Assembly (NCBI GenBank): GCA_964057225.1
Contig: OZ059896.1
Span: 6,882,001-6,946,000 of the forward strand
DNA: 64,000 nucleotides
From: Auanema rhodensis
Taxonomy: Eukaryota > Animalia > Nematoda
Reading direction: 5' to 3'
Positions 23,601 to 64,000 of the stretch are shown here, piece by piece. Position numbers and translations under genes: made by a program. Positions within the stretch are counted from its first letter, which is position 1, and every line of letters begins with the position of its first letter. The notes under the pieces were generated by a model. The model worked only from the letters and a program-made list of their open reading frames with translations. It made no database searches and was not told the DNA's origin.

Positions 23601-26600
23601 TCGCTTCTTGATTCCAAAAGCTGCTCGTAAGCAGTCGGGAGAATACACAATCACAGCTACCAACAGCTCAGGAACTGATTCTGTAACAATCAAGATCAAG
23701 GTCAAATCTAAGCCAACCAAGCCTGGAGGGCCCCTAGAAGTTGCTGATGTCTTTGAAGATCAATGTACACTCGCTTGGACACCTCCTGAAGATGACGGTG
23801 GTGAACCAATTGATCATTATGAGATTGAAAAAATGAGCACAAAAGACGGAATCTGGGTGCCATGCGGACGCACTTCAGATACCGATTTCAAGGTTGATAC
23901 TTTGAACAAGGGAGACCATTATAAGTTCCGTGTGAAAGCTGTGAATAGCGAAGGAGCTTCAGATCCATTAGAAACTGATACTGATATTCATGCTAAAAAT
24001 CCATTTGATCGCCCGGATAAGCCTGGTAAGCCAGAGCCAACTGACTGGGATTCTGATCATGTCGATTTGAAATGGACACCACCAGTTAGCGATGGTGGTG
24101 CTCCAATTACTGAATATCAAATTGAAAAGAGAACCAAATACGGTCGATGGGAACCTGCTATTACTGTTCCTGGCTCTGAAACCGCTGCTACAGTACCTGA
24201 CTTAACAGCAGGTGAAGAGTACGAGTTCCGTATTGTTGCCGTAAACAAAGGTGGTGCTTCTGATCCAAGTGATGCCTGTAAGCCGGTTATTGCTAAACCC
24301 AGAAACCGTGAGTTGAATAATAACATTTGATTTATAATATTTATTATTGCAGTACCACCGAAGATCGATCGTAGTGCTTTGAAAACTATCACCGTTAAAG
24401 CTGGACAAATGATTGGATGGGATGTACCAGTTGAAGGAGAGCCAATGCCAACCGTCACCTGGGCATGGCCCGATGGACGCGAAGTCAGAAATGGCGGTCG
24501 TGTTAAGCTTGACAATCCTGATTACTTGTCCAAACTTCATATTCGTCAAACTGAACGCTCCGATTCTGGAGTGTACATTATTCGTGCGGTCAACCCTAAC
24601 GGAGAAGATGAAGCTGAAGTTAAGGTGAACGTTATTGGTAGGTTTAATCTCTAGCCTTCATTGTTTTTATATAATGCTGTAGATAAGCCAACTTCACCAA
24701 ACGGACCTCTTGAGGTCTCAGATGTTTTCGCTGATCATGTGACTCTTGATTGGAAGGCGCCAGATGATGACGGTGGAATCCCTATTGAGAATTACGTAAT
24801 CGAAAAATTGGATACCAGCACTGGACGATGGGTCCCAGCATGCAAAGTTAATGGAGACGAGACGAAAGCCGTTGTTGATGGCTTAATCCCTGGACATGAC
24901 TACAAGGTATTTGCAAAGCTGTTTCAAGTTCATATAAAAGTTCAATTTCAGTTCCGTGTTGCTGCTGTAAATGCTGAAGGAGAATCTGATCCATTAGAAA
25001 CCTTTGGATCTACATTGGCCAAAAATCCATTTGAAAAACCTGGAAAGACATCTGCCCCAGAAATTACTGATTACGACAAGGACAGTGCGGATATCTCTTG
25101 GACACCACCACTCCATGATGGAGGTGCTCCAATTGAAGAATACGTCGTTGAAATGAAAGAAGAATATTCTCCCTTCTGGACTGAAGCCACTGTTGTACCT
25201 GCTGATCAAACAAACGCCTCTATTGGTAACCTGAAAGAAGGAAGCAAATACGAGTTCAGAATTCGCGCTAAGAACAAGGCTGGTCTTGGAGATCCATCTG
25301 ATCCTTCTGATACTTTAACACCTAAATCTAGAAATGGTTTGATAAGCCTTTATGTATATTTATATTATTTCACGTATTTTCAGTTGCTCCTGTGATTGAT
25401 CGGTCCGCAATACAAGAAATCAAGGTGAAAGCTGGTCAAGATTTCCAATTGAACATCCCTGTATCTGGAGAACCACCTCCAACTATCGAATGGTCATTTG
25501 AAGGCGAGCCATTGGAAGGAGATGATCGTCTTAAAATTACTAATGAGGATTACAAGACCAAGTTTGTCGTGAAGAGAGCTCTTCGTGGTGATACAGGAAC
25601 ATACATCATCAAAGCATCAAACTGTAATGGAACAGATACCGCTGAAGTTAAGGTTACTGTATTGGATCATCCAAGTTCCCCTCGTGGACCATTGGATGTA
25701 TCTAATGTAACTAAGGAGGGATGTGATCTTAATTGGAAAGAGCCTGATGATGATGGTGGTGCTGAAATCAGCCATTACGTCGTCGAAAAGCAAGATGCTC
25801 ATACCGGACGCTGGACAACTTGTGGTGAAGCAAAGGATACCAATTTCCATGTTGATGATCTTACACCCGGACATGAATACAAGGTTATCAGCAACTTAAT
25901 ATAGTTTCTTATGAATATATTTTTAGTTCCGAGTAAAAGCTGTTAACCGTCATGGAGATTCTGACCCTCTTGAAGCTAATCAATCAATTGTGGCTAAGGA
26001 TCCTTATGACAAGGCTGACAAGCCAGGAACTCCAGAAATTGTTGATTGGGATAAAGATCACGCTGATCTTCAATGGACTCCTCCACAGGATGATGGTGGA
26101 GCACCAGTAGAAGAATATCTCATCGAGATGAAGGCAGGAAACGGCGATTGGGTACAATCTTGCAAGGTTGGAAGAAAGTTTAATTTCCAGAATCTAATCA
26201 GCATGTTATTCAGGTACCAGCCGATCAGCTTACCGCTACAGCAAACGGATTGAAGCCTGGACAAACATATCAATTCCGCGTGAAGGCATTGAATAAGGCT
26301 GGAGAATCAACTCCATCCGATCCCAGTAAAACCATGGTTGCTAAGCCCCGTCACTGTAGGTTTCAATGTTCATTTCCTGATAAAATTCTCATTTCTAGTA
26401 CCTCCAAAAATCGATCGTTCAATGTTCAGTGATATTCGTCTTAAAGCCGGACAAACGATTAGCTTTGATGTTAATGTTGAAGGAGAACCAAATCCAAAGA
26501 TTGAATGGTTTGAACCATGCTTTAACCAAATTTAAAGAGTATTTAAGGTTCCTCAATGATACACCGTTAGCTTCTATCGGTAAAACCAAGATTGATAACT

Positions 26601-29600
26601 CCAACAACAACAATACCAAGCTTTGGACTAAGGATTCTGCTCGTAATGACAGTGGAAAATACAAGATTGTAGCTACAAACGAAAGTGGACGCGATGAAGC
26701 CGTAGTCTCCGTTAATGTATTGGACATTCCTGGAACACCAGAAGGACCTCTTCGAGTCAACGACATCCATAAGGATGGTTGTACTCTTCGTTGGGAAGCG
26801 CCAGAAGATGATGGAGGATCCCCAGTTACTAATTACATTGTTGAAAAGCAAGAAGACGATGGAAGATGGGTTCCAGTGAGTTCAACAAACCTTCTGTTTT
26901 ACTTTTCTTGTACATTCATTAATATTTAGTGCGGTGAAACATCTGACACTCAGCTTAAGGTTGGCAAACTTAATGAAGGACATGAATACAAGGTATAATC
27001 TTCGTATCATATTCAATTTCTCAAAACTCTTATTCTAGTTCCGAGTTAAAGCTGTTAATCGTCAAGGAGTTTCTGCTCCATTGACTACTGATCATTCGAT
27101 CTTAGCTAAGAATCCATATGATGAACCTGATCCACCAACTGATCTAACGCCAGTTGATTGGGATAAGGATCATGTTGATTTAGAATGGAAGGTAAGAAGA
27201 AAAGAAATTCAAACGAAAGGTAAAAATGTATTTAGGCTCCTGAAAATACCGGAGGAGCTAACATTGACCAATACATCGTTGAGAAGAAAGACAAATACGG
27301 TGATTGGGTTCCATGTGCTACTGTAGCTGGAAATCAAACTAAGGCTACTGTAAACAACTTGATTGCTGGAGAAGGATATCAATTCCGCGTTAAAGCTGTT
27401 AACAAGGCTGGACCAGGAAAACCATCTGATCCAACTGATACAGTTGTTGCTAAGCCAAGAAAAAGTATTTTAACCGACTATTCAGATCGTTTTATCAATA
27501 ATTCTTATTTCAGTGGCTCCAAAAATCAATCTTGCTGGATTACTTGATATTCGCGTAAAGGCTGGTCAACCAATTAAGCTTGATGTTGCTTTCGAAGGAG
27601 AGCCAGCTCCAACAGCTACCTGGAAAGCGAATGATGTTACAATCAATACTGGAGATCGTGCTGATGTCAATACACTTCCAACTTCATCAGAATTGCATAT
27701 TTTCTCTGCTGTTCGTTCTGATACTGGACTTTATTCTATTCAAGTTGAAAATGAGCATGGAAAAGATCGTGCTCAGTGTACCGTTACCGTACTTGACGTA
27801 CCGGAAGCACCTGAAGGTCCTTTGAAGATCAACGAAATTCACAAAGAAGGTTGTACTCTTAATTGGAAACCGCCATCTGATAATGGAGGATCTGATATTC
27901 TTCACTACGTTGTTGAAAAGATGGACACAACCCGTGGAACCTGGCAAGAAGTTGGTCAGTTTGCTGATTGCACTGCTAAGGTCGGAAAACTTATTCCTGG
28001 AAAGGAATACGAGTTCCGAGTCAAAGCTGTCAATCTTCAAGGAGAATCCAAGCCTCTGAATGCTGAGGAAGCTATTGTTGCCAAGAACCAATTTGGTAAG
28101 TTTTCAATCTTTTATTTTTAAATGATTTTTGAATGTCTAGATGTTCCTGATGCTGTTGAAAAGCCAGAAGTTGTTGATTGGGATAAGGATCGTATTGATA
28201 TTCAATGGAAGCCACCAGCAGACAACGGAGGATCTCCAGTTCAGCAATATATTGTTGAGAAGAAGGAACGTGGTTCGGGATTATGGACCGAAGCTGGAAA
28301 AACAGCTGGTACTTCGTTCTCTGCTACCAATCTTAAACCAGGAGTCGAGTATGAATTCCGTGTTGTTGCTGTTAATGAAGCAGGACCATCTGATCCATCT
28401 GATCCAACTGACCCACAAATGACTAAAGCACGTTACTGTAAGTTTTCCAATGTTTTTTATTGGCAATATGTTAAGCATTTCAGTGAAACCTAAGATTTTG
28501 ACTCAGCAACGCAAACTGAAAATCAAGGCTGGATTCGCTTACACTCTTGAGGCTGAGTTCGTTGGAGCTCCAGACCCAAGTGCTGACTGGAGCCATGATG
28601 GACAACCTCTTGCTCCAGAATTAATTCTTGATCATAAAACTGGTTACACCAGTATTTTCTTCCCAAGTGCTAAAAGATCTGATACTGGTAATTATCAGTT
28701 GAAATTGAAAAATGAAGTTGGTGAGGACGATGGAGTATTTGAACTCATTGTGCAAGGTTAGTGATAAGAATAATTAATTGCTTATGAGCATGTTCTTCAT
28801 TCAGATCGTCCATCAGCTCCTGTTGGACCATTAGAAGTATCAGATGTAACTAAAGACAGTTGCGTTCTCACATGGAAGCCTCCTGCGGATGACGGTGGCG
28901 CGGAAATCAGCAACTATGTTGTTGAGAAGCGTGACACAAAGACCAACACATGGGTGCCTGTATCAACATTTGTGACTGGTACTTCTATCACGGTTCCTAA
29001 GCTTATTGAAGGTCATGAATATGAACTTCGTGTAAGTGCTGAAAATGCTTTTGGCCGATCCGATCCATTAACAACTACTGATCCAGTTGAGGCTAAGGAT
29101 CCATTTGGAACACCTGGAAAACCAGGAAAAGTAAGACATGCATTCTAATCTTTTGAACAAATTTTTGTTTATAGCCTGAAATCACTGATACTGATGTTGA
29201 TCATATTGATTTGAAATGGGATGCTCCTCGTGATAATGGGGGATCACCCATTTCGCATTATGACGTTGAACGTAAAGATGTTAAAACAGGACGTTGGATT
29301 AAGGTATAAATCATTAAAATTGAAATATATAATTTAATTTCTGTTACTATAGGTTAATACTGCTCCTGTACATGGAACCACCTTCTCTGATCAAAGAGTC
29401 CAAAAGGACCACACCTATGAATATCGTGTTGTTGCAGTCAACAAGGCTGGCCCTGGACAACCATCAGATCCATCTGCTCAAGCTGTTGCTAAGCCAATGT
29501 TTGAAGGACCAAAGTTCGATCTTGGTATTGATGGTCGTGAATTCCGTGTGAAGGCTGGAGAGCCTCTTGAAATCATTGTTCCATTTACTGGATCCCCAAC

Positions 29601-32600
29601 TCCCGACATTACATGGACACGTGAGGGCAGACCTCTGAGCTGCGTTGATACTGACGATTCTCGCACTCGCCTGTACATTCCATCAGCTAAGCGCTCTGAT
29701 ACTGGCCCAGCCACCATCAAAGCTAGTAATCCGTATGGCGATGCTGAGGCCAATATCAAGATCACCGTTATCGACAAGCCAGCTCCTCCTGAGAGTTTAA
29801 CCTACTCTGATGTAACTCGTCACAGTTGCGCACTACACTGGCAACCACCTCGTGATGATGGAGGATCTGAAATAACCGGATACAAGATTGAATACCAGGA
29901 ATTAGGAAGTTCTTTCTGGGATCGCGTACCTGGATCCGTAAGCGGAACCAGTTACGTTGTCCGTGGTCTTGAACATGGTCAGACATATACTTTCCGAATT
30001 CGTGCTGAAAACCTGGTTGGATTATCTGATCACACATCTGGATCAACTGTTGTTATCAAGGATCCATTTGATCCTCCTGGTGCTCCCTCCACACCAGACA
30101 TTTTAAGCTACGATACCAATATGGTACACTTGCAATGGAATCCACCACGTGAAGATGGAGGATCTCCCATTCAAGGATACATCGTTGAGCGGTTTGAAAA
30201 ACGTGGAGGAGGAGACTGGGCTCCAGTGAAGATGCCATTAATCAAAGGAACAGATGCCGTTATTACTGGATTACACGAAGGAGAAACCTACCAATTCCGT
30301 ATTCGTGCCGTCAATGCTGCTGGACCTGGAGAAGCTTCTGGAGGAAGTGAACCAGTAACATGCAGGCCATATGTTGGTAAGTATTTATAAATAAAATTTT
30401 TGAATATTTAATTGTTTAATTGTTTAATTACTTAATTAAACTATTCCAGTTCCTCCTGGTGCTCCAGAACAACCACGTGTCGGTAAAGTAACTAAGAACT
30501 CTGCTGAAGTAACATGGATGCGGCCAACTCGTGACGGTGGAGCTCCTATTGATGGCTATATCGTTCAGAAAAAGAAGCTTGGTGATGATGATTGGACAAC
30601 ATGTACTGAAAAACCAGTAAAAGAGACAAGCTTTGTTGTTCCTAACCTTACTGAGAAGGAAGAATACGAATTCCGTGTAATTGCTGTCAACTCAGCCGGA
30701 GAAGGAGAACCATCCCGTCCATCCGACTTAACTTGTATTCAAGATCAACCAGGTCGACCTGTTCTGGACCTCTCTGGACTCAAGGATATTACTGTCCGTG
30801 CCGGCGAAACCATCGAAATTCGTATTCCATATACAGGTGGAAATCCAAAACCAACTGTTGACTTGCTCAATGGAGGACAAGCAGTCTTCGAAGATGATCG
30901 TACCTCAATTGAAGTTAACCCAGGAGAGATTATCATCAAAACCACTGCTGCAAAACGTTCCGATGCTGGACCCTATAAGATTCATGTTTCTAACCGCTTT
31001 GGAAAAGATACTGGCAAGTTGCATGTGAATGTTCTTGATGTTCCTGGTAAACCAACTGGACCTATCACTGCTAGTGATGTTCAAGGGGATGCTATGACAT
31101 TACACTGGCTTCCTCCCAAAGATGATGGCGGAGATCATGTCACCAACTATGTCGTTGAAAAACGGACTCCAGGAGGTGAATGGGTTAAAGTTGGACATCC
31201 TATCGGCACATCACTTCGTGTTCGCAATTTGGAACCAAATCAACCCTACGAATTCCGAGTTATGGCAGAAAACCAATACGGCACATCTGTTCCACTTGAG
31301 ACTGACGATCCAATTGTTGCCAAGAATCCATACGGTATGTTAAAGTTACAAACATTATTTTGTACAATATCTTATTTCAGATGTTCCTGATGCTCCTGGA
31401 GCTCCGGAAGCTCTTGAAACGTCTGAGGAAGCAATTACGCTCCAGTGGGCTCGTCCATACAGCGATGGTGGTGCTCCTATTCAAGGATATATCCTTGAAA
31501 AGCGTGAAGTCGGAACCAATAATTGGACTAAAGCTGTATTTGGTACAATTCCATCTACTAAAGCTCGGGTCACTGGCTTGATTCCAAAGAAGACTTATGA
31601 ATTCCGTGTCTGCGCAATCAATGCTGCAGGAAACAGTCCATATAGTGAGAACAGCGTTCCAATCACTGCTGAAAATGCACCAAGTCGACCAAAGATGGGA
31701 ATGCTTTCCAAAGATGTTCTTGCTTATGTTGGAGAAACAGCTAAACTTCTAGTTCCATTTGCTGCCACGCCCATGCCAAAGATTAAATGGGCAAAGGGAG
31801 AACTAGAACTTCGTGAATCGGAACAAAGATCTAAGATTGATAGTTCAGATTACCTTACAACTCTCATTATCACTGATGCTCAGTTGTCTGATTCTGGTGT
31901 GTATCATATTGATCTAGAAAACTCACAAGGAACTGATTCATGCACTGTACGTCTACGTGTTGTTGATAAGCCAGGTATTCCAGAAGGACCACTCGAAATC
32001 ACGGATATTTGTCCTGATTGTTGTACTCTTTCATGGAAACCACCTAAATCAGATGGAGGAGCCCCAATTACCAATTACATTGTTGAGAAATGTAATCCTC
32101 GCGATGGACGTTGGGAAAAAGTCAGCAGCTTTATTCGCAACACAACATATACCGTTCCTGGACTGCATCATAACCAACAGTACAAGTTCAGAGTTCGTGC
32201 TGAAAATCAATTCGGCATTTCTGATCCACTTGACAGCCTCGATTCTATTACTGCTAAATACCAATTCAGCGTACCAGGACAACCTGATGCTCCAACACTT
32301 CGCGATATGGATTCCAACTGGGCTGAGCTTGAATGGGATACTCCATCAGATGGAGGCTCTAAGATCATCGGATATCAAGTTCAATTCCGAGAGCCTGGAA
32401 GTGGCAAATGGATTAACGCATCCAACGACTTGGTTAAAGGCAATAGCATGCGTGTTACTGGACTCCGAGACTGTGCTGAATATGAATTCCGTGTCGTAGC
32501 AAAGAACGCTGCAGGATTCTCTAAACCATCACATTCATCAGACAGATTTAAGCTCAAGTCCAAATTCGGACCACCTGGACCACCAAGTCAAGCTTCAGCA

Positions 32601-35600
32601 GTTTCTATTGGTCGTAACCACGTTACACTTACCTGGGTGCCACCACTTGACGATGGTGGAAGCAAAATCACTGGTTACATTGTTGAAATGCGTGAATATG
32701 GAAGCACACTCTGGGTCAAGGTTTCAGATTACAATATTCGTGATCCTGAATTCACTGTTCCAAATCTCAAGGAATTCCACGATTACGAGTTCCGCATCAT
32801 TGCTGTGAATTCTGCTGGACGTGGTATTCCATCCCTTCCCACATCACCAATAAAGATTCAAGACCTCAATGGGTCTAAGCCGGTAATTGTGGTCAAGCCT
32901 GAAGATACTGCTCAGCCATACAACCGTCGTGCAGTCTTTGTCTGTGAAGCCATTGGACGCCCAACACCTGTATGCCGTTGGATGAGAAATGGACGCGAAT
33001 TACCAGAATCTAATCGCTACCGCTTTGAAGCTCACGATGGAAGCTACCGGTTTACTATTAAGGAAGTATGGGATATTGATGCTGGAGAATACACTTGCGA
33101 AGTCAGTAACAGTTATGGATCAGATTCAGCAACTGCTCGATTGATCGTGCAAGCTCCTCCAGTTATTGAACGTGATGTACCAAACACTATCTTACCAATG
33201 AGCGAGATGGTTCGTCTTAAGATTTATTTCTCTGGAACTGCACCATTCCGTCATTGCTTGATGTTGAACAAAGAAGAAGTTCCTGAAGACCACCCAACTA
33301 TTCGCACAGTTGATTTCGATGATCATATTCTCATCACTATTCCTTCCTTAACAGCCCGTGAAGCTGGACGATATGAATACACTATCAGCAATGATTCTGG
33401 TGAAGCTACCACAGGATTCTGGCTTAATGTAACCGGATTACCATCAGCTCCACAGGGACCTCTTATGTTTAGTAATGTTGGACCTCACCAAGCTCAATTG
33501 TCTTGGCGACCACCCGTTGATGATGGAGGATCCAGAATTACCAACTATGTTGTTGAAAAGCGTGATGTATCCAAGGAAGAATGGACTGTTGTTGCTTCAT
33601 CTATTCGTGATCTTAACTTCATGATTCAAGGATTATTTGAAAATCACGAATATGAATTCCGTGTTAGCGCCGCCAACATCAATGGCCAAGGAACTCCACT
33701 TGTTGGAGACAACAGCGTCATTGCACGCCTTCCTTTCGACCCTCCATCAGCACCTCTCAACCCAGAAGTCACAGAGATCGGATCCGACTTTGTTTCTCTT
33801 AACTGGCATCGACCACTCAGCGATGGAGGCGGACGTATTCGTGGTTACATCATCGAAAAGAAGGAAGATGGTCAAGATAATTGGATTGCATGTAATCAAA
33901 ATCCATCACCTCCTCACATTTTCAATATTCCAAACTTGATCGATGGACGTAAATACCGTTTCAGAGTTTTCGCTGTTAACGATGCTGGATTATCTGACCC
34001 AGTTGAAATGTAAGTTCAAAAACATATAATCATACGTATATCTTGTTTCTTTTTAGGGAAACCATGGAGTTCCGTTCTGCTGGTTCTGGAACAGCACCTG
34101 AAATCATTTCTCCACTCTCTAATCAATCATGTGAGATTGGTCGCAGTGTAACCTTCGAATGTAAGATATCCGGGGAACCTAGACCCGAGTATCGTTGGTT
34201 CCGAGGATGCAAAGAACTTGTGGACACCAAGAAATACACCATTCTCAACAAAGGAGATACTCAAGTTTTGATTGTAAACGACCTTAACAGTGAGGACGCC
34301 GATGAATACACCTGTCGCGCAACCAACTCTTCTGGTACTAAGAGCACAAGAGCTCAACTTCAACTGAAAAGCAAACCTCGCGTTTTCATACCACCTAAGT
34401 ATCATGGAGGATATGAAGCTCAAAAGGGTGAAACTATTGAACTCAAGGTTCCCTACAAAGCATTCCCCAGTGGAGAATCGAGATGGTACAAGGATGATGA
34501 GAAGATTGAGAACGGCGGTCGCTATTCGATCACAACTGACGACAAGTTCGCAACTCTTACGATTAGAGATGCTTCAAGAGAAGATTATGCTCAATATCGT
34601 GTAGTCGTTGAAAACAGTGTTGGTCAGGACAGTGGAATCCTGACTGTTACTGTTGCTGATAGACCAGAACCACCACGTTTCCCAATCGTTGAGAATATTT
34701 TGGACGAAGCCGTTATTCTATCGTGGAAACCACCAGCACTTGATGGCGGAAGCATGGTCACAAGTTATTTAGTTGAAAAACGTGATATAAGCGGTGGATC
34801 ATGGACTCCATGTGCTAAAACACGGTTCTGCTATCTTACTGTTGAAGGATGTAGAGCTAAGAATACCTATGAATTCAGAATGAGTGCTGAGAACAAGCAT
34901 GGCATCTCAAAACCATGTGAACCAACCGCTCCTGTTGCTATTCCAGGGAATGATCGTCAACGACAACGTAACTACGAAGTTGATGAAACAGGAAAGATTA
35001 TCCGTGGACGCGGCATTGTATCTGGAAACTATGATAACTATGTTATCGATGTCTGGAAACAATATTATCCCCAAAATATTGATATCAAGCATGAGTCAGT
35101 ATTGGATCATTATGATATTCATGAGGAAATCGGAACCGGAGCTTTCGGAGTTGTTCACCGTTGTACCGAACGTGCTACCGGAAACACCTTCGCTGCGAAA
35201 TTCGTTATGACTCCTCATGAAGCTGATAAGGATACTGTACGTAAAGAAATCAACACTATGTCCGTACTCCGCCATCCAAAACTCATCAATCTTCACGATG
35301 CTTTTGATGACCAAAATGAAATGGTAATGATCTATGAATTCATGTCTGGAGGAGAACTGTTCGAACGCGTTGCTGATGATTCCAACAAGATGTCTGAAGA
35401 GGAGGCCATTGAATATACTAGACAAGTTTGCAAAGCTCTTTGTCATATGCATGAAATGAACTATGTTCATTTGGACTTGAAACCCGAAAACATTATGTTC
35501 ACAACTAAGAAGAGTAATGAGCTCAAGTTGATTGACTTCGGATTGACTGCACATCTTGACCCTCGCAACAGCATCAAGGTTACAACTGGTACAGCGGAAT

Positions 35601-38330
35601 TCGCTGCTCCTGAAGTTCTTAACGGTCAAAACGTTGGATATTACACCGATATGTGGTCTGTTGGAGTTCTCGCATACATCCTCACATCTGGCTTATCTCC
35701 ATTTGGTGGATCCACAGATGATGATACCATGAGAAATGTTAAAAATTGCGATTGGAATATGGATGATACAGCATTTAGCAGTATTTCTGAAGAAGGAAAA
35801 GACTTTATTCGTAAACTTCTTCAATCCGACCCTGCTAATCGTCTTACTATTCATCAAGCTCTTGAACATCCATGGCTTGCTAGTAGCTATACTTCTTCCA
35901 GAGATGAGCCCATTCCAAGCAGTCGCTATCATAGCATTCGGGATTCAATCAGAACCAAATACGTAAATTTATTTTTTACATTAAATCTAATTCATTCTTA
36001 TTTCATTTCAGGATGCTTGGCCAGAACCTAATCCAGCAATCGGACGTATTTCAAACTTCAGTTCTCTTCGCAAACATCGCCCAGAGGAATACAAAATTCA
36101 TGACGCATTCTTTGATCGTACTGAAGCTCAACCACGTTTCATCATCAAGCCTTATGGCACCACTGTTGGCGAGGGACAAAGTGCAAACTTCTATTGTCGT
36201 GTAATTGCTAGTTCTCCTCCCATAGTTACATGGCACCATAATGCTCGTGAACTCAAGCAATCTGTCAAATACATGAAGAAATACGATGGCAACGATTTTG
36301 GACTAACTATCAATCGTGTGAAATTGGATGATAAGGGAGAATACATTGTTCGTGCTAAGAACTCATACGGCAGCAAAGAAGAAGTTGTATTCTTAAATGT
36401 TACTCGCACCAGTGAGCCATTCAAGTGTGAGCCTTTAGAGCCAATGCGTAAAGCTCCATCATTGCCAAAGGTGGAAGAATTTGAAGAGAAGCAATGTCCA
36501 CCTAAGTTCTCCTTCCACTTGCGCCCACGTCTTATCCAGAAAAATCATCAATGCAAACTTATTTGCTCATTACAAGGAAATCCAATTCCAAAGGTCGAAT
36601 GGCTTAAAGATGGAGCTCCTGTTGATCAAGATCGTGTGCAACTCATGTTCCGTAGTGGTGTCTGTTCACTTGAGATTTTCAATGCTCGTCTTGACGATGC
36701 TGGTACCTATAGTTGTCGTGCAACGAATGAACTCGGCGAAGATTATACCGAATGTGTGATTACTGTGCAAACTAAAGGAGGCGAGCCAATTCCAAGAGTG
36801 TCTACATCAACCAGAAATAGAAGATCAGTTTATGATAGTTTACGAACTTCTGATGTGGAACGCTCTAGAAGCTATGCCGAAATTAGACGTAGTTCTAGTT
36901 ATTCGCGCGCATTTTCGCCAGATACTAGATCAGCAAAAGATGATCTTAAGATGAGAGCAGCTGCGGAAACACCGAGCTTCATTACTCAGTTACAAAACGT
37001 CGATGTTGACGCCGGAGAAAACGCTGAGTTAAGCTGCTCCGTAAGTTGCCAAACCCAAAAATAAAAATAATAACTTCATTTTCAGGTGTCTGCAACTCCT
37101 GAACCAATTATTGAATGGCTCCACAACGGAGAACGTTTGAACAACTCTAGATATCAAACTACTTTTATCGGAGGAAAAGCTCGGCTCAATATTCTCAATG
37201 CTGAACCATCTGACAGCGGTGAATACTACTGCAGAGCGAGCAACTCTGCCGGACAGGAATCTAGTAAAGCCACCCTGTCCGTGAAACCTTCTCAAGCTAA
37301 TGGCACTGTTATTCAAAGTAACGAAGAAACCAGGTTCGTATATGTACAATAACAATTCAAACATTAAGAATTTCAAAACTAATATATAGTATTCAAAAAT
37401 ATAATTTAAAACAAAACAAATAAATCAAATTCGCTTTATTAATAATTACATTTTTCAGTGTTGTTAAGCATTTAACTAGTCAAATTGTTGCCAGTGGTAG
37501 CCCCATCCATCTTCAAGCAGTCAGTAAAGGAAGCGTTCAAAACGTCCATTGGACAAAGAATGGAAAAGAGGTACTTCTTTTTCTTTCACAAATAGCAAAA
37601 GGAGAGACGTAAACAATTTTCTGTTAAAGATTAAGAATCCGTCTAATGATGTTAAAACAACAACGACAAAATACTTTTTTTTTCTTAAATAAATAAATAA
37701 TGATACATATTTTACATGTTATGTACATTTATTATTTAGATTGAGGGAAATGACAGGATACAGACCCAAGCTGATGGAAACAACTACAGCTTGAGCATTG
37801 CTGATGCCACTGCCGACGACGCTGGTCAATACTATTTGGAAATTACTTCCAGCGACAAATCTCTTGTTACTGTAGCTTCTGTTGTTGTTTTAGGTAAACC
37901 TATTTTTTTAATTTTTTTATCAATAACTCGTGTACATTAGATGTATCTAACGACCCTCCAGTCACAAAATTGCCTAACTCCGTTAGTGTGACAGAGGGCT
38001 CTGCCACCAAGTTCATCCTTGAATTCGAAGATGCCGAAAACTATACTGTACAGTGGTTCAAGGTATACAACAAAACTTTTTTAAATTACAACAATTTTTG
38101 TTTCAGGGATCTGATAAGGTCGAAAAATCTGACCGCCATAAATCCGTGAAATCTGGAAATACCTTCAAGTTGGATTTCAAGGTATAATTTAACCTAAAAG
38201 AATGAATAGTAATATTTTTGATAATTTGTAGGAAGTTTCCAACTCTGATGAAGGAATTTATGTAGCCAAAGTAATCAAAGATAAGAAGGCTATTGCGAAA
38301 TACTCAGCTGCTTTGCTTGTTGAGCATTAA
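2668..38330 (+). CDS. unc-22: Twitchin (giant Ig/Fn3 muscle protein kinase), multi-exon; 5' end (start of first Ig domain) lies upstream of the window
   Basis: First visible exon 2668-2758 reads [31 protein letters not shown] (twitchin Ig1). Dozens of GT-AG exons encode Ig-Fn3-Fn3 super-repeats (WxPPxDDGG, YxFRVxAVN), then a kinase and C-terminal Ig domains. The last exon 38232-38330 ends [15 protein letters not shown]. Confidence 0.97.
6701..7168 (+). CDS. unc-22: Putative internal alternative first coding exon of unc-22 (156 aa, Ser/Thr/Arg-rich)
   Basis: Acceptor-like TTTACAG ends at 6643. Three in-frame stops precede ATG 6701. The ORF ends at a strong donor AGC|GTAAGT (7168/7169), phase 0, compatible with unc-22 exon 10275-10427. 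Confidence 0.6.
7538..7610 (-). tRNA. tRNA-Lys (anticodon CTT), intronic and antisense to unc-22
   Basis: Reverse complement GCCCGGTTAGCTCAGTCGGTAGAGCACCAGACTCTTAATCTGGCTGTCGCGGGTTCGAGCCCCGCATCGGGCT folds into a full cloverleaf with A and B boxes. A T7 run (Pol III terminator) follows at 7523-7529. Confidence 0.97.
19413..19727 (+). CDS. unc-22: unc-22 single-Fn3 exon, candidate cassette exon
   Basis: 315 nt, phase 1-1, encodes exactly one Fn3 domain; flanked by ~610 and ~520 nt introns while most neighbouring introns are ~45 nt. Confidence 0.75.
35110..35880 (+). other. unc-22: Twitchin Ser/Thr kinase domain (CaMK/MLCK-like), within the large exon starting ~34058
   Basis: IGTGAFGVV glycine loop, [23 protein letters not shown] and DMWSVGV motifs are all intact; domain boundaries approximate. 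Confidence 0.93.
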
Positions 38331-53000: not shown

Positions 53001-56000
53001 TCGCTGAGCCTGTGTCAGCCACAACCATTTCTTTATCATGGACTCCCTTATTGGCCTCACAATGGAATGGACAACCAAAAGGATATTTAATTCATTATAG
53101 AGTTAAAGGAGAAACAGAATGGGTAATTGAAAAAGTTAGATATGATAAAACCTTACTGATATTATTAAGAAAGAAATAAGAGCTTCATCTCTACGTGCTA
53201 GTGATTTTGTATTGTCGTCTTTATTACCCTTTACAACTTATGAAATTGAGCTTTTTACTGAGAATATGTTTGGAAGAAGTTCCTCTCCAGGCGTTGTGGA
53301 AGCAAAGTGAGACTTGATGTGGATTGCAATTACGCTTCTTACTACATTTAGGACTTATGAAAGTACACCGTCTGCTCCTCCCTTGAATATCCGTGCTATA
53401 AATGAGGGTTTACGCACTGCTGTGGTTCGATGGGCGGATGTACCTCAAGAATCTCGAAATGGTGATATTCTGGGATATACTGTACGTGTTTTGATCTTCA
53501 ATGGTAGCATAATAGAATTCCTTAAGGTGCGAGTTGTTCCTAAAGCGGAGTGGTTAAGGTCAGATGAGACTAGAGTCATTGATGTGCCTGGAACAGAAAA
53601 TCTAATGACCACAATAGCTGGATTGAAAGCCTTTACAGAATACGAAGTTTATGTTTCTGCATATACTATTGTTGGAAATGGCTTAGAGAATACTATTCCT
53701 ACAATCCTTCTAACAGATGAAGATCGTATGTCGTTATAGTGACTTCCAGTATATATTCATTTTTTCTAGTTCCTGGGCCACCGTCGGGAGTCGCATTTTC
53801 AGTGGTCAGTGAAGATGAAGTTCGCCTCAAGTGGACCCCTCCTGAGAATCCTAATGGAAAAATTAAAGTAATTATTGGTTTTTGATTAGTAGACGTTTAA
53901 TTTCTTTTAGAGTTATGTTGTTTCGTATTGGATTACTTCTGAAGGTCCTTCTTCTTCACATCGTACTACTATTCCAACTCTTGGATTTTTCGCTGCAGCT
54001 AGTAATTAATAAGACATTATAAAATATCTAATGATGTTGTTCAGATGTTAAACAGAATACTGGATACACCTTTTCTCTTGCTGCTGTAAATTCTATTGGC
54101 ACTGGACCAGAAGCACAAGTTGAAGTATATACATCATCTGTGAGATGTACGTTTAAGAAAAATCCTTATAATTATATTCTCCAAATGGTTTAGTACCTGT
54201 ACGAAATCCTCCCATGCCTGTTAGGGATGATAGAGCAATTCAATCACCTACTCAAATTTCTATACATTGGGATTATTCATCAAATGGAAAAACAGATGAA
54301 TATGAGGAATCTCCTGTTCGATCAGTTCAAGTTTGTTTTTCTTTTTCTTTTGATACTTAATATCCACATTAGGTTGAATATCAAAAAGCAAATGAAGACT
54401 TATGGACTCCTTCCCTACGTTCTATACCGGGAGATAAAACATCTGTGACTATTAACAGGTAATAAAATTAATATTGAATAGATGATACAATTCCTTTTAA
54501 GACTTTCTCCTAATACTGCTTATCGATTCCGCATCAAATTTGTGGGAGATTTCCAGCCTTCTATTTGGAGTTCTGAATCGGAATGGTTTCGAACATTACC
54601 TGCTGCTCCGGTGGCTATACCTTCTAAAATTACTGTTACTCCATATGATTCTAGTAGTATATTATTGCATTGGACTACGCCCTCTAGGTACCTACCTATA
54701 AAGTATATTAATTAAGAATATTTTGTTTTTAAGGTCGGAATGGAATGCCGATGCAATCGGATATCATATTTCTTATAAGGAATATCCCTCTAATGAAAGT
54801 TGGAGGAGCGATGATTTACCAGCTCAAAGTGAACGTCCAGATGTAGAACAGTATATTTTACCCAAATTGGACAGGTAAAAACATGTATTAAACTTTTTTT
54901 ATCAATATATTATAGTTTCCGTCATTACATAGTCCGAATGAGTGCATATAACTCTGAAGGAGATGGTTCATTTTCCGTTCCTTTATTCGTTTATGTTGGA
55001 TATTCGATTCCTAAGAGGAACATTACACATTTGTCTGGTGAAGCTAAATCATCATCTTCCATTTCTCTAAAATGGGATGAATGGCTTGATGACGGTAGCG
55101 ATTATATCAGTGGATTTAAGGTATCAAAAGTTTATGTTTGTTACATAAAGATTTTTGTCAAGGTTCGATTTGTACCTGTCACATCAATTTTATCTCCGAC
55201 AACTGAAGAAGAACTTATTGTTGTTGAAAACAACTCTTGTGTACTGAGTGATTTGAAAAAGTTTACTGAATATCAGGTAATTGAGTATATTTTACAAATG
55301 TTACAACTATTGGTCTGCAGATAACCGTCTCAGCTTATAACAGAGCTGGAGAAGGAGGAACAAGCGCTGTACGTTTAAGAACAATGGAAGACGTTCCTGG
55401 CCCAGTTAGCAATCTTCGATTTGTTGATGTTCTTCTTAACTCTGTTAAAGTGGTTTGGGATAAACCATTGCTACCCAATGGAGTTGTAACTAAATATACA
55501 GTTCATTACAGAACTTCCAAAGATAAGGTATTTGTATGCATGCAAACCTCTTTTAATAATAGCAAATTTTAGTCTGAGTACACTAATGAAGTTCAAACAT
55601 CAACTGATCATTCCTACTTCATTGCAACTAATTTACGTGAAGGTACAGACTATATATTTACTGTCTGGGCGGAAACATCTGCTGGACGAGGAACAGAATC
55701 TATAGCTAATGTAACTATTGGTCCTAGTACAAGTACGTGCATCGTGTTTTACAAATTACAACCTCAAATCTGTTAAGGCGGTCCACCAGCACCTACAACG
55801 CCTACGGTAATTCCGGGCCAATCATCTGTCACCATCTCATGGAAAGATTCAATCAACCACAGAATTGTGGGGCATCTGATTCAAGCTAAACGAGTTTCTG
55901 TTGTTTCTCTTGTAAGCATTTTTCATTGATCTTTTTAGTTTTTATGCCTAATTTAGCCTACAAGTACCCCGATACAAAGACGACATTCGAGATCACCACC

Positions 56001-58463: not shown

Positions 58464-61400
58464 TTAAAGTCGACGGCGGTAAGATTGCTCTGGTTCGGGT
58501 TCTGGTAATTTGAGCTTCTTAATGGTATCGTAGCTGAAATATGTTTATTAAGTCTTCTTAGCATCATAACTGAACACCCATTATAAATGTTTGATTTTTT
58601 ACTTACCTTGGTGTGGCATTCTTTCCATTTTCGTTGGTTTGTCCGATGTTAATGGCGTTTGAGTTGTTTCCTACATTGGTTTGGGCTCCTCCGACTTGGG
58701 TGTTAGATTGTCCTTGGTTGTTGTTTTGTCCGAGGTTTTGGGTGTGGATGAGGTTGTTCTTGATCAAGTCAGCGGCTCCAGCTCCAGTTCCGTAAGTTGG
58801 GAGTTGTGGCATGTAGGTGGATGGGGATGGCATGTACTTGGAGGCATCGTATTGTGGTCCCTTTCCATTGTTGTTGGTTTGTCCGATGTTGATGGCGTTT
58901 GAGTTTTCTCCAACGTTGGTTTGGGCTCCTCCGACTTGGGTGCTGGATTGTCCTTGGTTGTTGTTTTGTCCGAGGTTTTGGGTATGGATGAGGTTGTTCT
59001 TGATCAAGTCAGCGGCTCCAGCTCCAGTTCCGTAAGTTGGGAGTTGTGGCATGTAGGTGGATGGGGATGGCATGTACTTGGAGGCATCGTATTGTGGTCC
59101 CTTTCCGTTGTTGTTGGTTTGTCCGAGGTTGATAGAGTTAGCGTTGTTTCCTGCATTGGTTTGAGCTCCTCCCATTTGAGCATTGTTCTGTCCTTGTGAG
59201 TTGGTTTGTCCCAAGTTCTTGGTGTTGAAAAGGTTTCCGGCAACTAAGTTTTGTGGAAGATATTGGGCAGCATTACCATATCCTGGTTGAACGTATCCTG
59301 GTTGAACGTATCCTGGTTGGACGTATCCTGGTTGGACATATTCTGGTTGACCGTAGCTTGGAGCATTAGTAGCATCATATTGTGGTCCCTTTCCGTTGTT
59401 GTTGGTCTGTCCGAGGTTGATAGAGTTAGCGTTGTTTCCTGCATTGGTTTGAGCTCCTCCCATTTGAGCATTGTTCTGTCCTTGTGAGTTGGTTTGTCCC
59501 AAGTTCTTGGTGTTGAAAAGATTTCCGGCAACTAAGTTTTGTGGAAGATATTGGGCAGCATTACCATATCCTGGTTGAACGTATCCTGGCTGAACGTATC
59601 CTGGTTGGACGTATCCTGGTTGGACATATTCTGGTTGACCGTAGCTTGGAGCATTAGTAGCATCATATTGTGGTCCTCCTTGTCCTCCGTTGTTGTTGGT
59701 TTGTCCGAGGTTGATAGAGTTAGCGTTGTTTCCTACATTGGTTTGAGCTCCTCCCATTTGAGCATTGTTCTGTCCTTGTGAGCTGGTTTGTCCCAAGTTC
59801 TTGGTGTTGAAAAGATTTCCAGCAACTAAGTTTTGTGGAAGATATTGGGCAGCATTACCATATCCTGGTTGAACGTATCCTGGCTGAACGTATCCTGGTT
59901 GGACATATCCTGGTTGACCATAGCTTGGAGCATTAGTAGCATCATATTGTGGTCCTCCTTGTCCTCCGTTGTTGTTGGTTTGTCCGAGGTTGATAGAGTT
60001 AGCGTTGTTTCCTACATTGGTTTGAGCTCCTCCCATTTGAGCATTGTTCTGTCCTTGTGAGCTGGTTTGTCCCAAGTTCTTGGTGTTGAAAAGATTTCCA
60101 GCAACTAAGTTTTGTGGAAGATATTGGGCAGCATTACCATATCCTGGTTGAACGTATCCTGGCTGAACGTATCCTGGTTGGACATATCCTGGTTGACCAT
60201 AGCTTGGAGCATTAGTAGCATCATATTGTGGTCCTCCTTGTCCTCCGTTGTTGTTGGTCTGTCCGAGGTTGATAGAGTTAGCATTGTTTCCTACATTGGT
60301 TTGAGCTCCTCCCATTTGAGCATTAGTCTGTCCTTGAGCATTGTTTTGTCCCAAATTTTGGCCAAATACATGATTTCCTAAGAAGAAGTTTTGTGGAAGG
60401 TATTGAGCAGCTGGTCCATAGTTTTGTGGAACATATTCGGGCTGTAAAAGAATTAATTTTTTTGGTCTTTTTTTTTCTGATTACTCTTGGCTGGTCGTTA
60501 TGCTGTCCTTGTCCAACATTGTTCTCAGTTGTGCCGGCAGTGTTAATAGCTCCAGATTGTTGAGTTGTTCTTGGATTGATGATGTTACCCTTAAATTAAC
60601 TTTGATTTCAAAGCTAAAAAGATATTATTACCTTTCCAAGAGCCAAGTTGAGTAAATTGGAAGCTTGAATATTTGGTAATCCCAGGTGGATTAAACCATC
60701 GTTTTGAGGATGCTGCTGAAATTATAAATTTGCGTATAACAATCTAATGCTCATTGTTGTTTACTTGCAAAGTAAGTCTGTTATCTTGAACTCTGATGAT
60801 TCCGACGCCTGGAACATCGTATGCTGGTTGTTGGTTACCCCCCTTAAAATAATAAAACCATTGAAATGCATTGGGAAAAGCTCATTTGTACATTGTTATT
60901 AACTTGAGAAACTTGTACATTATTAACATTATATCCAACATTGTTCTGTGCCCCACCCTGTTGAATACTATGTTGTCCCTGAGTATTATCCTAAAACAAC
61001 CATTTTGTATAGCTTATGAGGGGCACCCTAACTTGTTTCCCTGTTAACATTCCTACGGCATTTCCTAAGAATCTCAGGACGTCATAACTGGGACGAGGGC
61101 TGGACTGTGGCAACTTTAAAATTAATGTTACTGGGAACTTTTGGTGGGTGTGGAACTTACGTTGTTGTTGTTTACTTGAGATACTTCGATGTTGTTAGTA
61201 TTAGACAGTATATTTGTCATCTCACCTCCCACCTGAACATTCCCTTGACCCTGCTGATTATTCTAAACCTTTTCCCATTTTTTTTTCTCTGCAGGTCTTC
61301 TGACCTGTGTGGCTTGGTTATTTTTCACGTTGTTGAATCCCAGAAGTCTCCCAATACCAAGAAAATCGTTACTGGGTCGTGCCTTGAAAGTTATTAAAGA

Positions 61401-61912
61401 GCAGTATATAAAAGTGATTAAGATATGCCCCATGTGTTTTCCTGTTTTCAATAAAAATTATATACTCACAGCAGTTTGAGAAGCCTTAATATCAGTTTTT
61501 GGTGCGACCTGGCTGGTAATAGTTCCAGTGTTGTGAACATTTCCTCCACTTGGTCCTGTGCTCTGAAAGGCATAGAGTTGGTTTTGCATGCTTTGTTATA
61601 AATTTACAATCAATGTTCTTGTTGGCAGCATAGCCACATTGTGTAACAGAGTTCCTAATGCTGAGGTGATAGTTGGAGCATCTTGACTGGGCTTCTGAAC
61701 TCATGAAAGAATGAAAATTGTGATAATTTTTCCGAATATACCTTCTCATCGACAGTCTTTCCATTTGCGGTGTAATCCTTTGGTTGAACTCGAGGAGAGC
61801 TAGCAGCTACTCTCTTCACTTCTTTGGGATCGTTGTTAGAATATCCAGAATTCTGAAGATCGTACTGGCATGCTACAAGTGTAGCCAGAGCCAGGAGACA
61901 TACTACACGCAT
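58464..61912 (-). CDS. Secreted Gln/Asn/Gly/Tyr-rich block-repeat protein A (~960 aa, 12 exons), unknown family
   Basis: Exons 61912-61742, 61694-61608, 61562-61470, 61382-61305, 61262-61161, 61113-61033, 60990-60892, 60842-60765, 60715-60632, 60589-60485, 60441-58607 and 58533-58464 join via GT-AG introns into one 2883-nt frame. Signal peptide MRVVCLLALATLVAC; TATAAAA at 62010-62004; AATAAA at 58416-58411 and 58392-58387. Confidence 0.85.
58620..60350 (-). repeat. Coding tandem repeat array: four 279-294 bp units with nested 15-bp (YVQPG) repeats, then two 240-bp units
   Basis: Near-identical units recur at offsets of 279, 294 and 288 bp, then 240 bp; the nested motif tatcctggttgaacg varies in copy number. 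Confidence 0.95.
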
Positions 61913-62895
61913 TGTCTAAAACATTATTATTATTAAAAAGAAAAAAAGACATAAAAGAATATGAGCGTAAGATCATGGTCTCCTTAATGCATGGAGAGAA
62001 CGCTTTTATATAACTCTTGATCTGACTAATTTAAATCGTTTCGGTTTTTTAACTGAAATTTAGGTTACCACTGCCTATATTAATTAAGTATTATCAACGA
62101 ATTCTAATAAGTGGTAGATTGTTTTCAAGGACAATATTGCTTTCTGTGAGTGACAAGTTTTTTTGCTGTTTTGCACTCATTCATTGACATTAGATACTCG
62201 ACCAGTTTTGTTTCTGATAAAACTAATTAAGAATATTGTTGTTAGAAGTGGACCTTATTTGTTTTGATATTAACGCTGCATTTATTTCTAATCATGATAT
62301 GTTTGCAGTTCTAAATCATCTGATTTATAAGTGAACAGTTTAAATTTATTTCATATAATAATAGAAATAGTCCTATCTTTAGTTCTATCAATATGAAAAG
62401 AACAGGATTTTATCATTATTTTTCACTTCGTTTTCTTATCCCCGTAAACTAGTAAAACTCAAAGTTAATTCATCGCTTTCTCTTCAGTAATACGAAGAAA
62501 AACATGAAAATTGTTGATTTTTTTTTCAAATATGCTATACATAAGATAGTGAAATGTTTTCGTTACTACTTTTTGTATTAATTCTAATTCGGTATGACCT
62601 TAATAATCTTCAAATTAATGTAACGTTAATTAGTCTTAAGAAGTAATATAGTATTAATTAATCTTGAAAGTATTATAGTTTCAATTTTATAATCATGATA
62701 AGCTATTATAATTATGATTTTAACGATTAGGTTGAATTGTTTCTTTCAAGTTTTTTATGGACTCTTTTGTTTTAGTTTTAAGTAAGAAGTAGATATATGA
62801 TATATAAACTTTATTTTGCAAATCATACATAGTTAACCAACACCATACAACATTTGCACTTATTATTAAGTATCAATCTTTAGAGTTTCAATCGG

Positions 62896-62917
62896 CTTCT
62901 AAAAATATTTTTAGAAG
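62896..62917. repeat. Perfect 22-bp palindrome in the 3' UTR of gene B
   Basis: CTTCTAAAAAT|ATTTTTAGAAG is its own reverse complement. Confidence 0.85.
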
Positions 62918-62926
62918 GCTAGAAGT

Positions 62927-64000
62927 TTAAGCACGGCGACGGTAAGATTGCTCTGGCTCTGGGGCTGGGAGGATGTGCTTTCTAACGGTATCGTAGCTGA
63001 AATATGTTGATTAAGTAATGAAAGTTTGGAAGCATTGTATTACCTTGGGGAGCTTCCTCCGTTGTTATTGGTTTGTCCAACATTGATGTTGTTGGAGTTG
63101 GTGTTGTGGTTGATCATATCACCTCCCTTTTGGACGCTGGTTTGTCCTTGGTTGTTGGTTTGGGCGAGATCCTTGGCGTTGAAGATGTTTCCGGTAACAA
63201 CGTGTGGTGCAACGTAGCCTCCGTAGCTTCCGTAGTTTGGTTGGGATGGGTAAGATATATATGGTTGTGGGTAGCTTGGTTGAACGTATTGGGTATCGTA
63301 TTGTGGTCCCTTTCCGTTGTTGTTGGTTTGTCCGATGTTGATGGAGTTGGTGTTTTGTCCAACGTTGGTTTGGGCTCCTCCGACTTGGGTGTTGGATTGT
63401 CCTTGTTGGTTGGTCTGTCCAAGGTTTTGGGTGTTGATCTTGTTAGCGGCCAAGAGTTGTCCAATGTTGTGTGGGTATACTGGGATAGTATGGTAGGAAT
63501 CCAACAATTTGATGTTAACATTTGGGCTGAGGATAGATTGGCTGTTGGAGTTTCCGTTTCCAGTTTGCTTGGTTCCCAAAAGACCGCCGAGAAGGCCTCC
63601 GAGGAGTCCACCAGACTTTTCTGAAGAAACAGCGGTAGTCTGAACGGTTGGCTCATTGCGAGCTGGTTGTCCGTATCCTGGTTCTGGTTGTCCGTAGCTT
63701 GGCTGTCCGTAGCTTGGTTGTCCGTATTGGGAATCGTATTGTGGTCCCTTTCCGTTGTTGTTGGTTTGTCCGATGTTGATGGCATTGGAGTTCTCTCCAA
63801 CGTTGGTTTGGGCTCCTCCGACTTGGGTGCTGGATTGTCCTTGGTTGTTGTTTTGTCCTAATCCAGTGTAGTCAACCTTGTTTCCGGCGAAGATGTTTTG
63901 TGGAAGGTATTGTCCAACGTTTCCGTAGCTTGGTTGAGATGGGTAGCTTGGTTGAGCTGGGTAGGTGGTTGGGACGTAGGTTGGGGCGTACTTGGAGGCA
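62927..64000 (-). CDS. Paralogous Q/N/G/Y-rich repeat protein B, 3' part (5' end beyond window)
   Basis: Open frame from 63999 to the donor at 63044 (ASKYAPTYVP...GQNNNQGQSSTQVGGAQTNVGENSNAINIGQTNNNGKGPQYD...). Last exon 62996-62927 reads (S)YDTVRKHILPAPEPEQSYRRRA*, with the same intron position and phase as gene A. AATAAA at 62815-62810. Confidence 0.88.

Follow-up and report, generated by a model that had tools for sequence, protein, structure and literature searches.

The functional amyloid protein FapC of Pseudomonas consists of imperfect repeats, rich in Asn, Gln and Gly, with long linkers of varying length between them; the repeats have been shown to stack as strand-turn-strand units with the linkers outside (bioRxiv 10.1101/2020.03.09.983882; PMC12392863). 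The pharyngeal cuticle of Caenorhabditis elegans contains Gln/Asn-rich secreted proteins, proposed to form an amyloid-like lining (PMC4232772; bioRxiv 10.1101/2022.03.11.483951). Here we describe two genes, A and B, of the nematode Auanema rhodensis that encode Gln/Asn-rich repeat proteins of another family. They lie head-to-tail on the minus strand, with ~1 kb between them, at 58464–64000 of a 64,000-nucleotide stretch of contig OZ059896.1 (assembly GCA_964057225.1, positions 6,882,001 to 6,946,000), hereafter the window, whose coordinates are used throughout. Both are genuine genes, spliced and with abundant transcripts. The family is undescribed and, judged by its sequence, belongs to nothing described; its repeated core carries a pattern of conserved Gln and Asn that may reflect stacked beta structure.

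Each repeat module consists of a variable Tyr/Pro/Gln/Gly spacer and a Pro-free core of ~45 residues that ends in P-x-Y-D. The alignment of cores (A1) comprises 81 non-redundant modules from six species. These align readily, with 5 invariant columns and 15 more at least 90% conserved, nearly all of them N, Q or G, so that 20 of the ~47 core columns are conserved between Auanema-type and hookworm sequences. Conservation is strictly of period 2, in two stretches flanking an invariant Gly-Gly. The first stretch (columns 13–27) reads Q13, L15, Q17, N19, Q21, Q23, N25, Q27; the turn is G29 G30; and the second stretch (columns 32–50) reads Q32, N34, G36, N38, N40, V42, V44, Q46, N48, Q50. The conserved face has a mean entropy of ~0.28 bits, the other ~1.64, the intervening columns being mostly variable. 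With 20 conserved columns in a period of 2, the core is therefore not plain low complexity. The pattern has the appearance of two beta-strands with one constrained face, made of Gln and Asn. Three G/A-Q-T/x-N motifs, 14–15 residues apart, fall inside it, and Q-T-N triplets repeat at fixed spacing. Among paralogous cores the proportion of nonsynonymous differences (pN) was below that of synonymous differences (pS) in every comparison, while spacers had higher pN. The motif that closes the module (A1 columns 70–73; for example 60220–60231, minus strand) has Y in 98%, D in 100% and P in 84% of the 81 modules. Candidate roles for P-x-Y-D are capping, Tyr modification (sulfation or cross-link) and a recognition site.

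This core marks a family that extends well beyond the window. A phmmer search with the large exon of gene A (exon 11, below) returned 28 clear homologues (E 1e-117 to 1e-25, 34–45% identity), all from Nippostrongylus brasiliensis, Necator americanus and three Ancylostoma species and mostly with consecutive locus tags; the gene B piece found the same taxa. Members include Y032_0132g1713-21, Q1695_007654-76, NECAME_09018/20, RB195_002928-34 and fragments from Auanema sp. JU1783. The core is repeated at least three times in the family, with 170 core matches across the set examined. The shared plan is a signal-like start, a conserved N-terminal stretch, 3 to ~11 modules and a conserved tail. The N-terminal region (signal-like peptide plus QYD..SGY..DYT) is common to gene A and strongylid members; by tblastn, residues 1–48 of a Nippostrongylus protein (P0012) match 61912–61769 at 52% identity (E 2e-9). 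The tail PEPEQ(S/A)YRRR recurs in a JU1783 fragment (P0036), and strongylid members end Y-[RK]-[RKS]-R-x. Head-to-tail arrays recur as well: a locus of A. ceylanicum (L001), where tblastn high-scoring segment pairs run across repeats, holds six same-strand family genes in 22.9 kb, arranged as in the window. Closest in detail are the JU1783 fragments, which share the AQYLPQNIFAGNK lead-in, PQYDSKYAPSYPQ spacers and the tail PEPEPEQAYRRRA with the window proteins and are ~50% identical to them overall, so that the two are of related yet distinct species.

The A1 profile was also compared with 1.84 billion representative proteins (50% identity clusters), no word index being used. Only 13 clusters were found at E 0.001, from Necator, Ancylostoma, Nippostrongylus, Auanema sp. 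JU1783 and two assembly fragments (P0037 and P0034; loci L002 and L003, contigs of SRR33891916/7). Those two fragments carry family cores and a strongylid-type tail, and probably come from a further species. In the same search no cluster labelled Caenorhabditis or Pristionchus was found at E ≤0.001. In these searches the family is lineage-restricted, seen in free-living worms of the Auanema type, in hookworms and in Nippostrongylus. For Haemonchus, Heligmosomoides and others we draw no conclusion about absence: repeat genes frequently go unannotated or are collapsed, and close relatives perhaps lie inside clusters.

No described family claimed these proteins. Pfam searches with the window exons and four homologues returned nothing beyond spurious or below-threshold hits (DUF1801, ivWA-helical_N), no single stretch passing. 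The core profile had 0 matches among PDB sequences at E up to 10, and a feature search of the ESM Atlas gave no usable match. We found no paper that describes the family, and the A. ceylanicum and Necator members were not found in the published supplementary tables examined.

Gene A begins with a signal-like peptide and the conserved stretch, continues with diverged modules on small exons, and ends with seven clear modules and a short tail. Its features are as follows.

58464–61912, minus strand: gene A, 12 exons, ~961 codons
61912–61742, 61694–61608, 61562–61470, 61382–61305, 61262–61161, 61113–61033, minus strand: exons 1–6
60990–60892, 60842–60765, 60715–60632, 60589–60485, 60441–58607, 58533–58464, minus strand: exons 7–12
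61868–61912, minus strand: signal-peptide-like N-terminus by translation, 15 residues, hydrophobic, MRVVCLLALATLVAC
61742–61867, minus strand: conserved N-terminal stretch QYD...DYT, directly after the signal-like peptide
60765–61382, minus strand: alternatively spliced cassette, exons 4–8, two diverged modules
58607–60441, minus strand: large exon 11, 1,835 bases, seven spacer-plus-core modules
60220–60396, 59941–60117, 59662–59838, 59374–59544, minus strand: exon 11 cores 1–4
59086–59256, 58846–59016, 58621–58776, minus strand: exon 11 cores 5–7
58464–58533, minus strand: tail exon, ending by translation in ...YDTIKKLKLPEPEPEQSYRRRL before the stop
58466–58464, minus strand: stop codon

The reading frame is open through all exons, and introns are in phase 0 except the last, which interrupts the Ser codon of the final P-S-Y-D in gene A and gene B alike, so that the motif is rebuilt across the last intron in both. 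In gene A we placed this intron by its GTAAGT and TTTCAG sites and the homologous gene B intron.

Window translations were split into modules on P-x-Y-D, and 10 modules match the core profile, each at E 1e-16 to 1e-35 (1e-26 to 1e-35 for those of exon 11). Core length is fixed, and spacers in the window range from ~23 to 91 residues; in exon 11 they are either runs of (YVQPG)3-4 or of the ASKYMPSPSTYMPQLPTYG type (ASKYMPSPS...). Tandem Repeats Finder reports 279-bp units in 3.8 copies (59294–60361), 240-bp units in 2.3 copies (58621–59172), and 15-bp units in 4–5 copies that code for the YVQPG runs. The 279-bp and 240-bp units are at 92% identity, which marks the gene A modules as young copies. 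Composition is 16.1% N, 13.7% G, 12.5% Q, 6.9% P and 5.1% Y, with N, Q and G together making up 42% of residues. Gene A encodes no Trp and only two Cys, both in the signal-like peptide; the gene B part has no Cys.

Expression was assessed by comparing spliced contigs from four public runs (X1–X4) with window positions 60300–63060. The contigs skip the ten gene A introns upstream of the last (42–87 bases, all GT..AG on the minus strand), and joints from exon 1 to exon 11 were all recovered. The runs are therefore of RNA, and show transcription and splicing of both genes. An artefact or non-gene origin for the locus was rejected on these spliced RNA contigs. The intergenic spacer at 61974–62810 had no contig coverage; within it, at 62600–62722, lie AT-rich tandem repeats with units of 27 and 33 bases. 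Word depth, by the tool's own caveat a poor measure of expression, was several hundred to ~2,300 over gene A and 16,000–36,000 over the last exon of gene B in three runs. The gene B figure is probably a sum over several paralogues: an X2 contig follows the gene B tail exon to the stop codon and then continues into a different 3' untranslated region (loose end 62928), which suggests at least one further paralogue inflating the depth.

Two extra joints, 61469 to 60841 and 61470 to 60715, coincide exactly with exon borders in each of the four runs and link the end of exon 3 directly to exon 8 or exon 9. Gene A thus has three in-frame forms: full, without exons 4–7, and without exons 4–8. Their depths sum to approximately the depth of exons 10–11 in each run (755 + 882 + 705 vs 2293 in X1); therefore 120 codons are absent from about a third of transcripts, and 146 codons from another third. 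By contig depth the three forms are roughly equal in amount in every run, and the codons removed belong to the diverged N-terminal modules.

The 5' flank of gene A was scanned for motifs, and the sites below have candidate roles suggested by those motifs. The acceptor next to the ATG is a likely trans-splice site and would fit trans-splicing of spliced leader 1 (SL1); an X4 contig extends to 61921 with one mismatch.

61916–62096, minus strand: gene A 5' flank, scanned for motifs
62096–62091, minus strand: TGATAA (GATA site), at −184 to gene A
62012–62003, minus strand: TATATAAAAG, at −100 to gene A
61921–61916, minus strand: TTTTAG acceptor, 3 nt upstream of the gene A ATG

Gene B is represented by its 3' part, 318 codons plus the tail, with three cores. 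Between modules it carries a non-repeat insert whose counterpart is recognisable in a JU1783 fragment (P0039, ~residues 420–480); the insert is therefore conserved.

62927–64000, minus strand: gene B, 3' part, with open frame and core matches, leaving the window at 64000
62996–62927, minus strand: last exon, tail ...YDTVRKHILPAPEPEQSYRRRA and then the stop
62997–63043, minus strand: last intron; loose ends of contigs at 62998 resume with sequence from 63047 on
63044–64000 and beyond, minus strand: gene B body, open frame
63733–63903, 63295–63459, 63055–63204, minus strand: cores matching the core profile
~63460–63732, minus strand: non-repeat insert between modules, GGLL three times, later a stretch ending ...IPVYPHNIGQ

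Much of the original prediction, made from the letters of this stretch, held up. It had proposed two paralogues here, and open reading frames and translation place both on the minus strand; the secretory-type start it gave to gene A is the hydrophobic, signal-like MRVVCLLALATLVAC, and the N-terminus of gene B does lie outside the window, the gene passing the window end. The Pro-free core of ~45 residues with its three motifs is seen in all 10 window modules, the lack of Cys and Trp in mature A is confirmed by count, and the tail PEPEQSYRRR is present in both genes. High expression agrees with the deep spliced contigs in four runs. It had called the proteins a nematode family that it could not recognise: the nearest relatives are the JU1783 fragments and strongylid proteins, the proteome search with a core profile that it recommended gave 13 clusters, from nematodes and from the two assembly fragments, and neither Pfam, PDB nor the literature yielded a match or orthology to a characterised family. 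The claim of C-ending codons held fully for one gene: the bias, seen in codons for Asn, Tyr, Ile and Thr, is strong in gene B (AAC 0.89, TAC 0.96, ATC 0.87) and only moderate in gene A (AAC 0.67, TAC 0.53, ATC 0.66), compared with 0.51, 0.44 and 0.35 in a neighbouring twitchin-like gene.

That neighbour is a very large gene on the plus strand at 6700–37400, twitchin-like (unc-22-like) in appearance, with Ig and fibronectin-III modules and a protein-kinase exon (open reading frame 34043–36031); the GC content of its block is 0.40–0.44 versus ~0.32 around it. Further fibronectin-III-like open reading frames at 53314–55324 (plus strand) mark another gene between it and gene A.

The interpretation we favour, at somewhat less than even confidence, is that these proteins form an extracellular structural polymer in which the cores stack as a Gln/Asn-ladder beta structure, with the Tyr/Pro spacers outside. 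The products of both genes would be secreted, to judge from the signal-peptide-like start. Each core of ~45 residues would be a strand, a Gly-Gly turn and a second strand, with one face almost all invariant Gln/Asn and a few Leu/Val. A lone core would be disordered, and stacking of cores in register, both from module to module along a chain and between adjacent molecules, would give a Gln/Asn-ladder beta-solenoid or cross-beta fibre. Spacers rich in Tyr, Pro, Gln and Gly would loop out and could provide elasticity and, with the invariant P-x-Y-D among them, sites for modification or cross-linking. The end product would be an extracellular fibre, gel or lining, and alternative splicing together with change in repeat number may tune the number of cores per chain. 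Assembly, cross-linking, a structural role and the site of that role are all things we infer here, and the amyloid or fibre reading is plausible rather than proven.

Structure prediction gave a mixed answer to the expectation, part of the original prediction, that stacked cores would form a beta-solenoid. An AlphaFold model of the 611-residue exon, computed with 29 homologous rows, stacks five cores, one rung per module, in a two-sheet beta-solenoid of low confidence. In modules 3–7 it shows two strands joined at the Gly-Gly by a three-residue turn, with a core predicted local distance difference test score (pLDDT) of 57–72 and disordered spacers. The model agrees with the expectation in kind but not in the size of the rung: the whole core here makes a single strand-turn-strand rung, as against the three 14-residue rungs per core first proposed. 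A wide structural search, run independently of Foldseek, matched this model mainly to beta-helices and beta-rolls: SufB/SufD-type helices at Z 8.5–6.5 with ~148 residues aligned (~30 per module), the CsgA fibril 8enq at Z 5.7 and a root-mean-square deviation (rmsd) of 9.9, and further UreD, RTX blocks, CAP/TBCC helices, adhesins and tailspikes.

Several results weigh against the stacked polymer. The single core, modelled with the 81-row alignment, was predicted to be disordered (pLDDT 51, no secondary structure), which does not support the expectation for single cores. In the exon model modules 1–2 are unstructured, mean pLDDT is 41.7 and the predicted template-modelling score 0.41. Foldseek found nothing in PDB with the exon model, and the Z scores of the wide search lie mostly in the range below 8 that, as the tool states, may mean merely a common arrangement, with the CsgA match at its rmsd of 9.9. 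AlphaFold tends to over-predict solenoids for repeats. Given the low confidence, the caveat on Z and this tendency, the stacked model is weak evidence. The N+Q maximum is 29 per 80 residues in both genes, narrowly missing the prion-like threshold of 30. Finally, the family was not found in the examined part of a table of the adult A. ceylanicum excretory-secretory proteome, a result that fits insoluble material and absence equally well.

Some of these same results would be expected of a secreted, disordered low-complexity protein without ordered cross-beta structure, forming a hydrated gel, coat, lubricant or phase-separating matrix, which we consider a possible if less probable account. It would explain the pLDDT of both the large exon and the single core, it suits the N+Q+G content and the want of any Pfam or PDB match, and nematode cuticles hold many secreted low-complexity phase-separating proteins (bioRxiv 10.1101/2022.03.11.483951; PMC4232772). 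It sits poorly, however, with the 20 invariant or ≥90% conserved positions in a period of 2, kept from Auanema to hookworms and rare in disordered regions, and with a core of constant length in which variation is confined to the spacers.

A solenoid that does not form fibres was also considered: a soluble or surface beta-solenoid whose Thr/Asn/Gln face binds chitin, another polysaccharide, mineral or ice, acting as an adhesin or binder. The fixed spacing of Q-T-N triplets would suit such a face, and RTX beta-rolls, adhesins, tailspikes and a beta-helical antifreeze protein are among the structural matches (Z 4–5.6), but such weak matches could be had with any solenoid, the Ca-binding GGxGxD consensus is missing, and the locus holds no pointer to a ligand; we judge this very unlikely.

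Nematode polyprotein antigens use dibasic or tetrabasic cleavage sites, and the notion of a polyprotein precursor cut at P-x-Y-D borders into ligand, peptide or antigen units of ~60–100 residues is very improbable: P-x-Y-D does close almost every module, even across the last intron, and the C-terminus is basic (Y-R-R-R-x), but module borders have no dibasic or tetrabasic site and could as well be rung-capping or modification sites, and we know of no protease of P-x-Y-D specificity, which counts against it. Membership in the ABA-1/NPA polyprotein antigens was rejected likewise, the borders reading G-(K)-G-P-Q-Y-D-A or K-P-S-Y-D-A. Cuticle collagen was rejected because there was no collagen Pfam match and no Gly-X-Y runs in the translations.

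Should the cores of the favoured polymer stack, the family would rank among the few animal examples of functional amyloid on the repeat-and-linker plan of curli and Fap. A stronger version, that the family is an Auanema/strongylid animal counterpart of curli and Fap, an independently evolved, alternatively spliced, multi-rung Gln/Asn-ladder amyloid with P-x-Y-D capping or cross-linking that serves as a major extracellular material, we regard as distinctly doubtful. Were the polymer real in hookworms, it would be an abundant parasite-specific extracellular material that could matter for the cuticle, feeding or reproduction, or as an antigen or marker. Auanema rhodensis is a genetically tractable, free-living worm in which RNA interference works (PMC6469403), and both human hookworms and the model worm Nippostrongylus have relatives of these proteins. 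Even without amyloid, the family is very highly expressed, positionally conserved and unannotated.

Among known systems, silk fibroins and suckerins share the alternation of beta-forming blocks with amorphous Gly/Tyr/Pro blocks, high expression and tandem families. Their beta blocks are Ala/Gly/His-rich, whereas those here would be polar Gln/Asn ladders; automatic annotation names two Nippostrongylus members 'Fibroin heavy chain-like', with no homology behind the label. ABU/PQN proteins are Cys-rich. Like the window proteins with their signal-like start, they are nematode, Gln/Asn-rich and secreted, but the window proteins have no Cys after the signal-like peptide and are not homologous to them, a difference the original prediction had already drawn. 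Membership in ABU/PQN was rejected for want of Cys-rich repeats and of a Pfam match.

Curli CsgA has strand-turn-strand repeats, Gln/Asn ladder positions and Gly turns, features that the period-2 conservation and a low-confidence model suggest for the Auanema core. It differs in that window exons and homologues have no Curlin-repeat Pfam match, and in that a rung here would span ~35–40 residues versus 19–23, with long spacers between rungs; the match to fibril 8enq, at its rmsd of 9.9, is unspecific. FapC shares the plan of fixed-length cores and variable linkers, an architectural likeness only, with no sequence match. The Auanema genes are unlike it in being animal, with introns, alternative splicing, Tyr/Pro-rich linkers and no Fap-type export operon, and in having 7–11 repeats rather than 3. 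By analogy, then, the family appears closest in design to FapC and curli CsgA, and closest in biology to the Gln/Asn-rich proteins of the C. elegans pharyngeal cuticle.

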